From: Macrostomum lignano
Taxonomy: Eukaryota
Reading direction: 5' to 3'
NCBI GenBank assembly: GCA_002269645.1
Contig: NIVC01003970.1
Coordinates: forward strand, 3,281-67,280
DNA length: 64,000 nucleotides
Positions 1,192-57,260 of the stretch are shown one piece after another. The notes beneath the pieces are model-generated. The model had not been told where the DNA came from. It made no database searches and saw only the letters and a list, made by a program, of their open reading frames with translations. Both the position numbers and the translations under genes were made by a program. Position 1 is the first letter of the stretch; the number at the start of each line of letters is the position of its first letter.

Positions 1192-1691
1192 TTCGCAGTA
1201 CCATTGCCACGAGCAACTATTCAGTTGAGAAATTCGTGACAGAGAAAGAACAGATTATTCGCATTGACTTCAAGGAGGTTCACTATTTAACTTCCATTCA
1301 GTTGTCTGATTTGGAGACCAAAGATGAATTCTACATAACATATCAAGTCACTCTCAATAGTTCAGACAAGCAGTTGCGTTCACCCTGGTACGATACCGTG
1401 TTCAAGGTAGGTCTTCTGTTGATAGATTTCGTTGATCTGATTTTTTTAGTTTTGTTATAGCTCGTACTCGTATTTTATAATAGGCATGCAATTGTTCTTG
1501 CAGCTAGTATTTTATATTGCTTTTCTCATACTTTCTGATATCCCTGGCATTCCAGTTCTCAACCTACAACACAGTTGAAGACTTTCTAATCCCGCTGATA
1601 CTCACGCCGTCAAGTGTCAAGCTGCACTTTAGCCTTAACGCCACCATTGAGACCGCTGACATCATGAATATTTGTGGCATCGAGATTACTG
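1192..1691 (+). CDS. Degenerate discoidin (F5/8C) domain, 2 exons (1192-1406, 1556-1691)
   Basis: IIRIDFKEVHYLTSIQL...FYITYQ / LIPLILTPSSVKLHF...ICGIEITG; homologous to 8543-8950 and 21584-22008. Confidence 0.6.
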
Positions 1692-4600
1692 GTCTGTCCT
1701 TGAACTTTGCTTATCTACTTATTGCAAAACTTCCGATGTCTTGAAATTCCGATTCAGTTAGACAATCGGTGGTCTGTAGAACTGTAGCTATTATTAGTTC
1801 TGAATTTTTTTCTAAAATAGATCAATCAGTACATATTGAGGATTTTAACAGACTGATAAGCTGAGAGTCCTTTGCATTTTTACCCTCTTTCAACTTGATA
1901 TTTGCTAACGAATTTAAGACGAGTGCCCGCAAGGCTGGCGGCCGCTCTACAACATCTGCCTCAGGATCGTCCCGTCAGCTCTGGACTGGAACAGTTCGCT
2001 GCAGTACTGCCAGAGCCGCTACTGGAATGGCAAGAATGGCACTCTGTTCATGCCCAAGAGTGCCGTGCTGCGCAACTTCGGTCACATGAGGTGAACTGTG
2101 GTTGAGAAAGTTCATTGGGTATCGAGCCTGTTCAATATTCCTATCTTTACTGCTTATTTTCAATGAAAAACGAAATACTGTATACTCAAAGCTTCAATAT
2201 TATTGTCAATATGCAGCGCCAGAGAGAAAAAACCTGCTTTCTTCTGTTTTACTTAATTCAAGAAAAAAATCAAGCCAATCTTCTTAGGCCGTCAGTTAGC
2301 CTGGTACTGATGCGTTCAATGAGAAATAAAAGAAGAAATTTCACTCAAACAAATCTTGCCTTCCCATTAATTTAGAAACATGCAGTTCCACGTCGGTGCA
2401 TACCGAAACTCTTCAACCGGCCGCTGGTACTGGCTGGATGGAGAAGAAGTTGAGCAGGGAGCATTCTACATGGGCCAGACTCAGAGCAGCTCGTGTGTGT
2501 ACTTGTCTACGGACTACAATGGGCTGTATAGGATCGACTGCTCTGCTAGTTTGTACTTCTTGTGCCAAATTCCCAAGAAGATTTGTGAGTAGGACTTTAT
2601 GCTTTGACCCTATCAAATTGAAATTCTGCTCACGAAGCTGCAATGCAATTCTAGGGCCTGATCGACAGCAGACAGTTGTCCTCAACACATTCTATCACAA
2701 CAACGTTGGGTCAGAAGATGACAACATACAGTACACACAGGGACCTTTGCACGAGTTGCTTAGCCTGTGGGCTTTGGATGAATCGCTCGCATACATACCA
2801 GCTGTTTATGACATTTGGCACTCAGCAAATCTGAACAACTTTGCCATCTCAATCGGCACTGAGAGCGTCCAAAGTGTGACCGGAAAGTACTCAGTGTACC
2901 AAAAAACCCAAATAGAAAATGGTGAGTGACTTAAGTTATGACGGCATGAACCGAATTTATGCACAACTGTAATCCGAATTATGAGGAATAAAACATAAAA
3001 AATATTCGCCAATGCTCAATATAAACTGCTTTGCAGGCTGCCTGGAGCCCCTGTTGTACCCGGAGTCCGGTATAGTTGGAGTTCGCGTTAATGCATCGAC
3101 ATCAAACTCGAGAAGAGGTCCCGAGAAGGCATTCCTGGGATCGGTCATGTCAAAAGAGGGTGAGATATTTATTGTTTACCTTAAGCAGGGAAAATGTTAA
3201 AAAGTGATTAGCTCTCATAAAAATGATTTGCAGAGCACGTGCAGTGCGCACTAAGCCGAGCTGACTACCAGTTCTACGACGGGCAGTGGTCGGTCACTGA
3301 GCAGGGATTCGCCTGTGCAAACTGGGACACTGTGACCAGCACCTACAAGGACTACAACAACACGTGCTTGGAATGTGAGTTTATCGGCCGACATTTCTTT
3401 GGAAAATTGACCATTTACGGGCGTATTTACTCAGCTATATCTAAAGTTTTTGCACAAACATTGTAATTCCGCAAACCCTCTTGCAGATATAACTAGTCGA
3501 TACTCCAGCTGCTACGATCAGGGAGGCGTTATCAGAGACTGCTACGATCTCCAAAAAGCTTACTGCAGTAAGTTGAGATGCCTGATTTACATGTAGTTGA
3601 AACGAATCGGGCTCATAATATTATCAATGTCCATATTTTCCGTTTAACTAGCAATACTTAACTAGCAGGCTGCTACTATGAAAACATATAGAAAAAATTT
3701 TCACACTTACTAAGAAAATGAAGTAAAGATACAAATATAGTACCGCAGATTGTGCGGAACTCGCATTTTTGCAACCTATTTTTTACGCTGGCCTGCCCTT
3801 CCTAAAAATCCCTACGGATGGTAGTAGCGAATAGTTATTCAAGCGAAATAGTTTGTTAGCACCGAAGTCCTGTTTGAAACCATATGCGCCTATTCATGAT
3901 GCTTGATAACAATGACAGCTCGAATTGTTTTAAAATTTCGTGACTCAGGTCAGTACTACCATCCGCCGGCAAGCTATAATTACATCGGCAACATCCTGGT
4001 CGATAAAGTGCTGTACTTTACTGGGATCATGCAGTCTTATAGCATAAATATTAATTATGGATTTTATGTGCACACGGTCGGCGTATCCGTGGCAACACCG
4101 CCCAATAATTGGTGGCTCCTTGCTGATCTCAAGTTGCAGTACCGAATTTCAGCAATCCGTGTCGACCCGTGTAAGCTTATCTATTGTCACATTGAGCCAT
4201 TAAAATTGTTTTTTATGTTTAAAGTGATTTCATCCTCTTAAAACGTATTGTAAGAAGCGAAAACAGTGCTTTAAAGTATTGCAAAATCATTGCAGATCGA
4301 AACCTATACAATGTGAGCTTCAGGACCAGCAACTCGTGGAATCGTAGCCTCGGTGACCTGGCCTTTGAGAACTGGGACACCTGCTTCAACTGGAACTTTG
4401 TGGAACCGCTGTCAATTTACGCCTCATTTATTACTTGCGACACGCCTCAGACTGCTCGCTATTTGGTGCTGGTTAGCCCTGTCAATAACGTTGGGAGTGC
4501 TCGCATGGACATCAACTACATCAATGTAATGGGAGATGAAGGTAAGCTCACTAACCACATAATATACGAGCTAGTTAAGAATCATTAATAGAAGAAAGCG

Positions 4601-55200: not shown

Positions 55201-57260
55201 ACTTGGATTCCTCTTGACATCGGTGTCGATGGCTATAGCGTGCCAATTTTCATCAGCACTAGTGTCTGGCATACAAATTTTATTTCGATGAAGCCGCCAA
55301 AGCTATTACTGGGGATGCGGCATATTCAAGCAGAGCTCAGCGGGAACTACCAATTAAGGTTCATGTTGTATGGAAGGCTAGCCGATGGTAAGCTTTGCTT
55401 CTGGATTTACAAGTTACGATTATGTTCACTTTGAGGGCTTTCCTGTCTAATAGGCACTGAAATAATTTGAGTAATACTACTAGTAATACTCATACTTAGT
55501 AATAATATTTGAGCAATAGTATCATTTAAAGTAGTTGCATGTTAAAGGATGTCCATATCTATAGTGTTAGAAATTCCAGTCAAACTGCTTTTTGTATGCA
55601 GATTGATTGTTGAAATTTATAAAAAATGTAGTAACCACTCATAAAAACTTAAAAAATTTCATGTACTTCGTCGACTGATCCTTGCAGAGATAAACGGAGG
55701 CGCTCAATTTCCATGGCTGATCTCTCGAAACCAGCCGGTCCAGCTTTCTTCTCAATACAGCAGCACCCATCCTGGATACAGGGCCACGGATGGTGTGACA
55801 AATACGTACGGTAATACACATTCTTACTTCATCGTCACATCGAGCAGTGTACTGCGATGGGCCTATGTGGACATGATTGTACCAAGGAACCTCTCCTATG
55901 TCGTTGTCTACACAAGGAACGCTGGAGATGCCCGTAAGATGGCTTTACTTTAGTTTGATAGAGCCGTGAAAATTATCATACATATAACCAAATGTTCATA
56001 ATACGAGTATGCTTCATTGAAAACTTTCAAGCAGACTAATTCTCTACGAAAAGCGTTTTGAACTGCATTGCAGATATTTACACTATCCGGAACACCGAGT
56101 ACTTTGCTCAACTGTCCCTTATGGCTGGAATTCCCACATTTGCTGAAGCTGACCTGTGCTATCGTCAGGGCAACACGTATCAAAAGCCCGATGATTTAAA
56201 GTACATTGACTACTTGATGTTTCCGTGTCAGAAAGTGAGTTTGCACTCAACTTATTGAGTGGAATAGTAATTAGAGTATTTTATTTTGAGCGCTTTTTCT
56301 CACCTGGTGAATTATTCAGAGCGCGCAGTACCTTACGGTACGCAAAAACGATGGAATCTCGGAGTACTTGAGCATCGCTGAAATTGAGGTTTTCGGAACT
56401 CTGCATGGTTAGTTTTGCGTGACTTAATAAATAAGCGTAGGGTACTCGTACTCTAACAAAAAAATTTGATAGCTCACTATTTGACTTCAATTTCTTTTAG
56501 CCGATCCGCAGCTGAACGCCCTGGCCCAGATGCCGATGGGTCTGGGCGAGTTCGTTCACTTCGAGTGGATGGTGTCAGGCAACACGCAGAACCTGGGAGG
56601 CCTCTTCTCCCTGCCCCTGTCAGCTGCCGAGACTCCGTTCGTAGAAAGTGCCCTGCGATTTGAGTCACTCGGCACGACAGAATCCTATGTTCGATTCTAC
56701 TTCCCCATCAGCATGACTGTCACCGGCATGATTGCTCAGGGCAGCGGCAAGCGCTCCAAAGGCTTGCGCGGCAGCCCTAATAGCTACAGGCTGCGTTATT
56801 CATTGAATAAAAATTATTTGAAAATGCAAAACGTACTGGACCAGGCAAATAACATAGTGAGTGATTTTTTGTTGTGAGCAATGTCCGGTTTCGTCTACTG
56901 ATAAGTAGAAAGTATAGACTATGGCGCGAAAAACTTACAGGGCGGGCAAAGAAATGTTGCCTTGCGAGAGCACTGAATAAATTTGGTAGTTTTACTCGTA
57001 GTAGCGTAATGCATGATTCATAAATGTATTAGACCCTGCAGCGTAATTTGAATGAAGCTGTTGGAAGACAATAGTAATTTTCATAAATCTGAAACCTCAA
57101 TTTCAGATTACATTCCAAACGATTCGTTACGCTGACACCATTTCTGGAATAAACTACTTGCCGAGACCAATAGAGACACAGCTGCTCGAGGCAATTCTGA
57201 CCAGCAGCTGGAGTTCGAATAGTTGGAAGCTTGAGATACTGGGATTTCCATCGGCTACTC
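49224..57260 (+). CDS. Polycystin-1-like gene copy B, 5' part (about 18 exons): signal peptide and supermodule 1
   Basis: Exon 1 MLRATFLLLFTCLLLLAVVLESQAKY (49224-49302); CTL 50327-50719; PAN-like 50797-50960 and 51063-51183; discoidin stub 52626-52754; kringle 52841-53108; FTP 53236-53786; Methyltransf_FA-like 53873-54874; discoidin C-half 54948-55387; FTP 55688-56407; discoidin 56501-57260; phases compatible throughout. Confidence 0.88.
51215..51441 (+). mobile_element. 5'-truncated relative of the SINE at 26698 (shared 3' tail)
   Basis: gccaac.cccaaggcgcagt.aagtgtacatgc.taacgataa...gcttaaagtgcgccagg.tgcacac...ctaataaaaa matches 26835-27035. Confidence 0.75.

Follow-up and report, generated by a model that had tools for sequence, protein, structure and literature searches.

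A stretch of the genome of the flatworm Macrostomum lignano (assembly GCA_002269645.1, contig NIVC01003970.1, positions 3,281 to 67,280 of the forward strand; 64,000 nucleotides (nt), hereafter the window) raises the question of whether a single gene can join a very long array of lectin-type domains to a polycystin channel. An earlier note, made from the letters of the window, had described such a protein of about 8,800 amino acids (aa) by joining the exons of two repeat copies. Our analysis leads to the same basic answer: we consider it likely that the window holds one protein-coding gene, encoding a single polycystin-1 (PKD1) family protein of ~8,800 aa. The gene lies on the plus strand and runs from 49224 across a repeat boundary (57456|1) to a TAA ending at 44726.

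Window positions 1-6270 (copy A) recur at 57457-64000 (copy B) with ~99% identity, the window being 1.11 units of a 57,456-bp direct repeat, and exons 17-30 were taken from copy A. The joining of copy B exons to copy A exons was borne out by this repeat and by an M. lignano database protein (A0A1I8G7N1, P0007; 1,868 aa), which aligns gap-free to exons 2-28 and is colinear both across the join and across the boundary between the first two ectodomain cassettes described below. The gene was modelled with a purpose-written gene finder that combines a 3-periodic Markov coding score, splice-site matrices and frame-consistent exon chaining by a dynamic programme. It was trained on long open stretches, retrained on its own output and applied to the rotated unit 45501..57456 + 1..45500, with one further run in which 45500-49200 was barred. 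All runs except the last retraining round returned a single gene from 49224, and after retraining its end lay at 44726, so that an independent gene finder gave the same start and stop as the earlier note. Stop-free stretches of at least 60 aa sum to 20,746 aa on the plus strand vs. 11,902 aa on the minus strand, and the G+C content of the window is ~0.44. The curated model contains 92 exons, with GT-AG borders at 91 of 91 introns, a median intron length of 98 nt and 55 of the 91 introns in phase 1. Two exons (55084-55387 and 56501-56856) were lengthened on the evidence of the homologue A0A1I8G7N1, with canonical donors and the right phase. The following features mark the ends of the gene.

49224..49302, plus strand: exon 1, with the ATG and a cleavable-looking signal peptide identified by hydropathy (MLRATFLLLFTCLLLLAVVLESQA|KY), donor GTAAGT, followed by a phase-1 intron; chosen as the first exon in two of the four rounds of one retraining series
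44005-44128 (weak acceptor, uncertain) and 44527-44726, plus strand: exons of the C-terminal cytoplasmic tail, with the TAA at 44724-44726
44791..44796, plus strand: AATAAA polyadenylation signal, 65 nt past the stop

An alternative first exon at 47497-47632, which appeared in the last retraining round, was dropped in favour of the signal-peptide exon at 49224.

The identity of the protein is given by its C-terminal part, which consists of the following elements.

35535..37308, plus strand: REJ domain (190 bits, profile positions 4-418 of 452) in four exons
39384..39647, plus strand: degenerate GPS-like motif followed by the first transmembrane segment (TM1, 39591-39647), from hydropathy and sequence
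39885..40392, plus strand: PLAT/LH2 domain in the first cytoplasmic loop (50.7 bits), on which lipoxygenase PLAT and PKD1 matches in the PDB agree
40546..43305, plus strand: channel part, with TM2-TM6 at 40546-41745, the polycystin/TOP domain at 41770-42387 and TM7-TM11 (PKD_channel) at 42577-43197

One Pfam PKD domain lies upstream of REJ (48-60 bits), further repeats being visible only as internal similarity in a 3.2-kb exon. Kyte-Doolittle hydropathy revealed 11 hydrophobic segments, arranged as in PKD1: PLAT follows TM1 (residues 7704-7722) and precedes TM2 (7910-7928), and the TOP domain separates TM6 from TM7. Polycystin_dom and PKD_channel scored 97-101 and 106-110 bits in Pfam, respectively. 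In the PDB, the TM1-PLAT region is closest to PKD1 (chain B of 6A70, E 1.6e-40) and the last six transmembrane segments are closest to PKD2L1 and PKD2 (E 1e-49 to 1e-46). These features identify the protein as a polycystin-1 family member that carries every defining feature tested except a cleavable GPS. The claimed PKD-REJ-GAIN-PLAT-11TM core was therefore recovered in its PKD, REJ, PLAT and 11-segment parts, and its GPS was found to be without the two terminal cysteines and the HL|T sequence. The GPS-like stretch reads C-QR-W-x6-W-x7-C-x12-VFRSNLFGS and keeps the C-W-W-C framework; no Pfam GPS hit was obtained at E<=0.01.

The literal coding sequence (26,422 nt) breaks frame, and two 1-nt insertions turn it into 8,807 open codons plus a stop. 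The ~8,800 aa after two 1-nt corrections announced in the earlier note thus became 8,807 aa after exactly two insertions. The first break and the repeated segment lie as follows.

50958..50962, plus strand: frame problem 1, at the exon-3 donor (50960), where TGTGGA|GTGAGT leaves phase 0 and the exon at 52626 needs phase 1
57457..64000, plus strand: copy B of window positions 1-6270, holding exons 17-30 again with their frames broken by 17 single-base indels

Adding a single G at frame problem 1 (GG read as G) brings the frame back, and no additional residues are seen there in the homologue. Frame problem 2 is a frame switch at ~31845-31870, where one inserted base anywhere in 31822-31899 restores the frame; this correction recovers the C-terminal third of a Fibrinogen_C domain. 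Both problems had been masked in the gene-finder output by patch micro-exons (51063-51117 and 31925-31938), which were removed as artefacts. Comparison of the two copies over 2,658 exonic bases gave 17 differences, all of them 1-nt indels (13 being deletions in copy B), and no substitution; these indels are why the earlier reader had to use copy A from 1192 on. The introns of the two copies differ by 17 substitutions. Because the exonic differences are all 1-nt indels, indel error in the long-read assembly is the most likely source of both frame breaks and of the broken copy B. The competing explanation is that the locus is a recently formed pseudogene, or two tandem copies in decay, in which the frameshifts at ~50960 and ~31850 and the 17 indels are real. 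The literal coding sequence is indeed not open, and 17 indels break the frames of copy B exons relative to copy A, yet 26.4 kb of coding sequence in 92 exons becomes open after two single-base insertions, with no in-frame stops, no substitutions and every splice site intact. Moreover, neutral decay would yield mostly substitutions, whereas exonic differences that are all indels, 13 of 17 of them deletions in B, have the profile of uncorrected long reads. We consider decay of the locus unlikely and retain the reading of an intact gene with assembly errors.

The same comparison bears on the 57.4-kb tandem duplication, which may itself be assembly redundancy (a haplotig or an unresolved overlap placed in tandem), with one gene copy per haplotype. 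The copies are 99-100% identical, their exons differ by indels only, and the repeat extends to both window ends with no duplication junction visible. In addition, the stretch 132-521 is 92.6% identical to 57853-58229, with many indels, and looks like a poorly polished segment. The 17 intronic vs. 0 exonic substitutions speak on the other side, since they hint at a tiny real divergence under constraint, although allelic variation fits them equally. Redundancy is thus a serious possibility that stops somewhat short of being probable; it is compatible with the single-gene reading and bears on copy number only.

A further rival concerns the product rather than the locus. Here the gene would give a secreted giant multi-lectin protein, ending in or just past the Fibrinogen_C exon, and a separate downstream PKD1-like protein, through spliced-leader (SL) trans-splicing within an operon or through an internal promoter. 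Macrostomum uses SL trans-splicing, which counts for such a split, as does the literal fibrinogen exon, which shifts frame and runs into a stop at ~31902. M. lignano models of relatives are likewise divided into 'C-type lectin domain-containing' (1,868 aa) and 'REJ/PLAT/PKD domain-containing' pieces. However, the fibrinogen exon is separated from the 3.2-kb exon by just two small in-frame exons and introns of 77-105 nt. No ATG leading into a signal peptide is present in the downstream part, and a hydropathy scan found no hydrophobic segment between residues 21 and 7703 (~7,680 aa). The frameshift amounts to one missing base in an assembly with demonstrable indel noise. Furthermore, two gene models from the annelid Dimorphilus extend unbroken from their C-type lectin, discoidin and fibrinogen domains past REJ into the channel, in an order colinear with that of the flatworm protein; residues 2043-5985 of one Dimorphilus protein (P0012) correspond in order to residues 5139-8701, which bridges the lectin and channel parts. 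Two separate products are very unlikely on this evidence, and one continuous protein is preferred. Within its ectodomain, the boundary between cassettes 2 and 3 falls inside one exon, and the 3-4 and 4-5 boundaries are introns of 135 and 101 nt.

What, then, is the ectodomain made of? Chunked self-BLAST and alignment resolved four full copies and one partial copy of a ~1,200-aa cassette, with ~25% identity among them, beginning at residues 27, 1209, 2411, 3697 and 4937. The order of its sub-domains is D1 (C-type lectin-like, CTL), D2, D3 (kringle-like), D4 (F-type lectin), D5 (ConA/LamG-like), D6 (discoidin), D7 (F-type lectin), D8 (discoidin) and D9, with no assigned fold for D2 and D9, and two cassette copies carry a secondary kringle insertion. 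This arrangement indicates that the ectodomain grew via internal tandem duplication of a multi-exon cassette. The ectodomain is laid out as follows.

50327..57260, plus strand: cassette 1, exons 2-16, present in one copy in the window and matched gap-free in every exon by A0A1I8G7N1; CTL-1 exon 50327-50719, kringle-like 52843-53300, F-type lectin 53301-53886, ConA/LamG-like 53890-54982, discoidin 54986-55386, F-type lectin 55387-56502, discoidin 56503-57253
1192..8953, plus strand: exons 17-37 (copy A), with D9 of cassette 1 and the whole of cassette 2; CTL-2 1921-2571, kringle-like 3236-3956, F-type lectin 4002-4650, ConA/LamG-like 4654-5373, discoidin 5383-6237, F-type lectin 6238-7112, discoidin 7116-8471, D9 8472-8953
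8954..22007, plus strand: cassette 3; CTL-3 8954-9461, kringle-like 10056-10525, F-type lectin 10571-17841 split by a satellite-bearing intron, ConA/LamG-like 17845-18458, discoidin 18462-19256, F-type lectin 19257-20258 with a canonical Kringle insert at 19587-19844, discoidin 20740-21465, D9 21466-22007
22008..28497, plus strand: cassette 4, in a variant layout; CTL-4 22008-22676 followed directly by F-type lectin 22719-23425, ConA/LamG-like 23868-24494, kringle-like 25848-26284, discoidin 26297-27517, discoidin 27449-27991, D9 27992-28497
28498..31225, plus strand: partial cassette 5, colinear with residues 2043-2407 of Dimorphilus P0012; CTL-5 28498-29333, a divergent stretch, discoidin 30956-31218
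31331..31938, plus strand: Fibrinogen_C exon (82-84 bits, cut-off 22), which holds frame problem 2 and has its true donor GTAAGT at 31939
32034..32177, plus strand: EGF/EB-like cysteine-rich exon, weak in Pfam (EB E 0.14, BRINP 0.0056), called from its cysteine pattern and colinear with Dimorphilus
32266..35487, plus strand: giant 3.2-kb exon that leads into REJ and contains cysteine-rich internal repeats as well as at least one Pfam PKD domain (34821-35048)

The identity of the sub-domains was assessed using Pfam, profiles of the cassette copies against PDB sequences, and AlphaFold2 (AF2) models searched with Foldseek. Pfam matched Lectin_C, Kringle, F5_F8_type_C, F5_F8_type_C_2, Fibrinogen_C, PKD, REJ, PLAT, Polycystin_dom and PKD_channel. 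Lectin_C scored 26.4, 32.2 and 24.7 bits in cassette copies 1, 2 and 4 (cut-off 22.6) and 21.7 bits in copy 3, and copy 5 was found only via the protein's own profile, which recovers all five copies. The about 5 C-type lectins of the earlier note are accordingly present as five C-type lectin-like domains, three above the Pfam cut-off, one just under it and one by own profile. Five kringles had been claimed and five were found, one canonical (the cassette-3 insert, 52 bits against a Pfam cut-off of 34.3) and four degenerate. A profile of D3 alone matched solely kringle proteins (HGF, plasminogen and prothrombin; E 1.6e-7), covering their N-terminal half only, and the degenerate cassette-4 copy was called from the alignment alone, without a Pfam hit. 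The D7 profile retrieved FBP32 (3CQO, E 9e-8, near full length), Sm-hPAF (3LE0) and SpX-1 (2J1R), and the D4 profile retrieved eel agglutinin (1K12, E 9e-5) and 3CQO, assigning both to the F-type lectins; the cassette-4 F-type lectin copy scored 32 bits on F5_F8_type_C_2. These PDB profiles confirmed the fucolectins of the earlier note as F-type lectins, with a count of ~8 rather than 7. The D6 profile matched factor V/VIII C domains, neuropilin b1/b2, DDR2 and discoidin-2 (E 3e-16 to 1e-5), and D8 scored 31-38 bits on F5_F8_type_C when searched in chunks, its profile also finding Dimorphilus discoidins. Nine discoidins are supported in this way, and the ~13 proposed would require the four D9 domains, for which there is no match.

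D5 is probably a ConA/LamG-like domain. In cassette 4 it reached 19.7 bits on Laminin_G_3 (E 1e-3), under the cut-off of 27.6, and an AF2 model of the cassette-3 copy (predicted local distance difference test (pLDDT) 65, predicted template-modelling score (pTM) 0.67) resembled legume-lectin, galectin, pentraxin and GH16 folds in Foldseek (template-modelling score ~0.4, E ~1e-3). Where '3 Methyltransf_FA-like plus LamG' modules had been proposed, four ConA/LamG-like domains were counted; the LamG part is probable, and the Methyltransf_FA-like part was not confirmed, as the stretch looks ConA/LamG-like. The ~6 PAN-like modules gained no support, with no Pfam hit at E<=1 and no PDB profile match. 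The fibrinogen-C module is present once, and the EGF/EB module is present as an EGF-like module with weak Pfam support. Single-sequence Pfam searches with D2, D3, D4, D5 and D9 of cassette 3 gave no hits, hhalign among the nine cassette sub-domains gave nothing significant with shallow profiles, and a homologue search with the 3.2-kb exon gave nothing at E<=1e-10, a threshold that was too strict. The ectodomain contains 151 N-glycosylation sequons.

Several observations weigh against the view of this locus as one gene for a working glycan-sensing polycystin-1 of ~8,800 aa. The uncorrected sequence stops at codon 227 and again past the fibrinogen frameshift. Exon boundaries past residue ~1,800 depend on the purpose-written gene finder and on domain continuity, and there are weak exons, namely the one with its acceptor at 29141 and that at 44005-44128. 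The public M. lignano annotation breaks relatives into fragments of 600-3,200 aa. In the GPS-like stretch, F and S replace CxC and N-L-F replaces H-L-T. The pore filter at 43087-43104 reads LGK ('mlgKfd' vs. 'ilgDfd' in PKD2L1), so that the first filter Asp is replaced with Lys. On inspection, none of the five aligned C-type lectin-like copies has an EPN/QPD or a WND motif for Ca2+ and sugar at the expected place. Finally, D2 gave no Pfam hit at E<=1 and no PDB profile match, the AF2 model of D2-D3 was unusable (pLDDT 30), and D9 gave no PDB profile match.

D2 and D9 may be new or highly diverged extracellular folds. D2 (~60-90 aa) occurs at residues 152-213, 1331-1414 and 2535-2618 (e.g., window 2572-2921), and its cassette-2 copy has zero cysteines. 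D9 (~115 aa) occurs at residues 1089-1208, 2299-2410, 3587-3696 and 4820-4936 (e.g., window 8472-8953).

How unusual such a protein is was evaluated by a HMMER scan of the REJ-to-PLAT region against 1.84 billion representative proteins, which gave 1,673 relatives, of which the best 150 were listed. Among these 150, the longest are two Dimorphilus gyrociliatus proteins, DgyrCDS14438 (CAD5126282.1, 6,071 aa) and DgyrCDS14777 (CAD5126713.1, 5,543 aa), both in NCBI/UniRef and uncharacterised, followed by proteins of ~4,300-4,450 aa. If transcribed as one unit, the flatworm protein (8,807 aa) is therefore the largest family member found among the best 150 of the 1,673 relatives, human PKD1 having 4,303 aa. 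Like the flatworm protein, the Dimorphilus pair has repeated C-type lectin and discoidin domains followed by Fibrinogen_C, an EGF-like module, cysteine-rich repeats, PKD, REJ, PLAT and the 11-segment/PKD_channel part. Over the stretch from the last discoidin through the channel, it is colinear with the flatworm protein and 21-28% identical to it. The stem of Fibrinogen_C, EGF-like, cysteine-repeat, PKD and REJ modules appears, from its order and similarity, to be common to the flatworm protein and its annelid homologues. Unlike the flatworm protein, the pair is ~2,700-3,300 aa shorter and lacks a nine-domain cassette repeated four times. It also has a Pfam-detectable PAN_1 after a C-type lectin domain and an F-type lectin or F-type lectin-like domain that follows the fibrinogen domain. 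In the first 2,758 aa of DgyrCDS14438, Pfam found Lectin_C, PAN_1, F5_F8_type_C, F5_F8_type_C_2 and Fibrinogen_C, and no Kringle. The unusual ectodomain claimed in the earlier note thus stands in its scale and its kringles, whereas the same basic design in two Dimorphilus proteins is, in part, the database precedent that speaks against novelty. Annelid databases already contain a lectin-rich polycystin-1 subfamily without a name; the novelty of the flatworm protein lies in its size, which cassette amplification produced, and in the added kringles.

Better-known family members are further away. Human PKD1 (6A70 chain B) shares REJ, PLAT after TM1, 11 transmembrane segments, TOP and TRPP-like last six segments, along with PKD repeats and one C-type lectin-like domain. 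By contrast, it is half the size, has LRR, WSC, LDL-A, 16 PKD repeats and a cleavable GPS (HL|T), and lacks the kringle, F-type lectin, discoidin, ConA-like and fibrinogen modules. The sea urchin proteins SpREJ1-10 have 1,450-3,716 aa, and the modules of SpREJ/PKD1 are limited to C-type lectin, SUEL, EGF, WSC, LRR, LDL-A and PKD; sea urchin REJ proteins are proposed glycan- or ligand-sensing receptors, e.g., in egg-jelly recognition (PMC1934368). SpREJ and human PKD1L2/PKD1L3 resemble the flatworm protein in having lectin modules (C-type lectin, SUEL) ahead of REJ. They differ from it in having at most 1-2 lectin domains of 1-2 module types, in being less than half its length, and in lacking kringle, discoidin, F-type lectin and fibrinogen domains.

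The best database matches are proteins of M. lignano itself. Its 1,868-aa entries A0A1I8G7N1 and A0A1I8J9X6 correspond, as a paralogue or an allele-like copy, to the first 1,800 residues and have the same exon structure; the model ends in cassette 2 and is annotated 'C-type lectin domain-containing' rather than polycystin. The identity of A0A1I8G7N1 to the present protein is 76% overall and is mosaic by exon, at 97-100% in exons 5-9 and 19-20 and 53-90% elsewhere. It follows from this mosaic that Macrostomum has two or more diverged copies of this member of the gene family, and the pattern suggests either gene conversion between paralogues or a chimeric database model. Other M. lignano PKD1-like paralogues are 27-40% identical. 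Database searching found no entry covering the whole flatworm gene, and a literature search for Macrostomum together with polycystin found no paper on this gene.

How might such a protein work? By analogy with the solved PKD1-PKD2 and PKD1L3-PKD2L1 complexes, whose chains it matches, it is probably the one large subunit of a heteromeric TRPP channel in which it pairs 1:3 with a PKD2-like subunit. It would be located in a sensory or epidermal cell, in either the plasma membrane or the ciliary membrane. The array of F-type lectin, discoidin, fibrinogen, kringle and ConA-like domains, together with the 151 sequons, suggests multivalent glycan or matrix binding or a long tether. The long, heavily N-glycosylated ectodomain would then be a putative multivalent binder of extracellular glycans or matrix, or a tether, and would relay to the channel either the binding of a ligand or a mechanical load. 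Because the C-type lectin-like domains lack sugar motifs, multivalent glycan recognition would rest mainly on the F-type lectin, discoidin and fibrinogen modules. As both CxC and HL|T are missing, the ectodomain is probably not autoproteolysed and remains joined covalently, which suggests that it is neither shed nor a source of a cleavage-exposed tethered agonist as in PKD1. The exchange of the filter Asp for Lys likewise means that the subunit probably modulates, and does not define, ion selectivity. Of the receptor-channel proposed in the earlier note, the LGK filter in place of LGD thus leaves a probable non-pore-determining subunit of a heteromeric TRPP channel. Its proposed sensor, coupling multivalent ligand recognition to a TRPP channel, keeps the lectin-type folds and is weakened by the missing sugar motifs and the altered filter.

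Related systems offer a guide to where the protein may act. Planarian mechano- and chemosensation requires the pkd1L and pkd2 genes, which are expressed together in ciliated sensory neurons (PMC11448475), and a hydrodynamic startle response of an annelid is described as polycystin-mediated (PMC6294549). These roles make a sensory or epidermal ciliary function the default expectation. The flatworm PKD1-like subunits of Schmidtea mediterranea, pkd1L-1/pkd1L-2 with pkd2L-1/pkd2-4, provide the functional model that we infer for the Macrostomum gene; the planarian paper describes no lectin-rich ectodomains, the word 'lectin' occurring in it 0 times (PMC11448475). A broader joint reading is offered tentatively, and we regard it as rather doubtful: a spiralian (flatworm and annelid) polycystin-1 subfamily would combine a conserved Fibrinogen_C/EGF/PKD/REJ stem with a lectin array amplified separately in each lineage, and in Macrostomum ~30 putative binding domains in a ~7,700-aa uncleaved ectodomain would form a membrane-anchored, multivalent tether to glycans or matrix, of micrometre scale, gating a heteromeric TRPP channel, possibly for substrate, mate, gamete or adhesion sensing.

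If the gene gives one transcript, it would clearly illustrate how a receptor ectodomain grows when an entire cassette of several domains and exons is duplicated in tandem. The ligands of polycystin-1 ectodomains are an old question, and a homologue with an ectodomain made largely of recognisable lectin folds could ease it; in situ hybridisation and RNA interference are routine in this flatworm. The public Macrostomum annotation fragments such genes, and the lectin-rich subfamily shared with annelids is so far unnamed. The known picture of what a polycystin is remains unchanged.

The intron that splits the first F-type lectin domain of cassette 3 contains a large tandem array.

11477..17857, plus strand: 145-bp satellite, 44 copies at 99% identity, inside one 6,754-nt intron

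Each satellite unit copies the polypyrimidine tract and acceptor of the host intron and the first ~30 nt of the next exon, the remainder being unrelated AT-rich DNA and a poor donor (GTGCTA). The satellite thereby presents 44 decoy acceptors, and behind every one of them lies a 57-nt segment that is open in phase 1. The unmasked gene finder placed a 57-nt exon in each unit; these exons, which corrupted the splice matrices on retraining, were dropped, as the unit is a copied acceptor and exon start with a poor donor. The F-type lectin domain resumes colinearly beyond the array, and the array was treated as intronic on this pattern.

A second repeat lies in the intron between exons 37781-37874 and 38338-39680.

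37992..38334, plus strand: (TTAC)n microsatellite, ~86 units

All three frames of this array are open, and its reading as coding 'LLTY' repeats was dropped for the intron, which has good splice sites.

Among the relatives, an 863-aa protein from a Kangiellaceae metagenome-assembled genome (MEE4247216.1, P0013/P0160, 'PKD domain-containing', on a 4.9-kb contig) is 64% identical over its full length to residues 6088-6934 (PKD/REJ) and almost certainly represents a piece of flatworm-like eukaryotic sequence that was wrongly binned with a bacterium. An Rfam scan of the window returned no RNA family, and the 4.5-kb spacer from the stop to the next start (44727-49223) holds no convincing open reading frame on either strand and no Rfam match. 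This intergenic spacer contains a 51-bp x 8 tandem repeat at 48109-48517, ~700 bp upstream of the start codon, and a 15-bp x 7 repeat at 41496-41603 is intronic.

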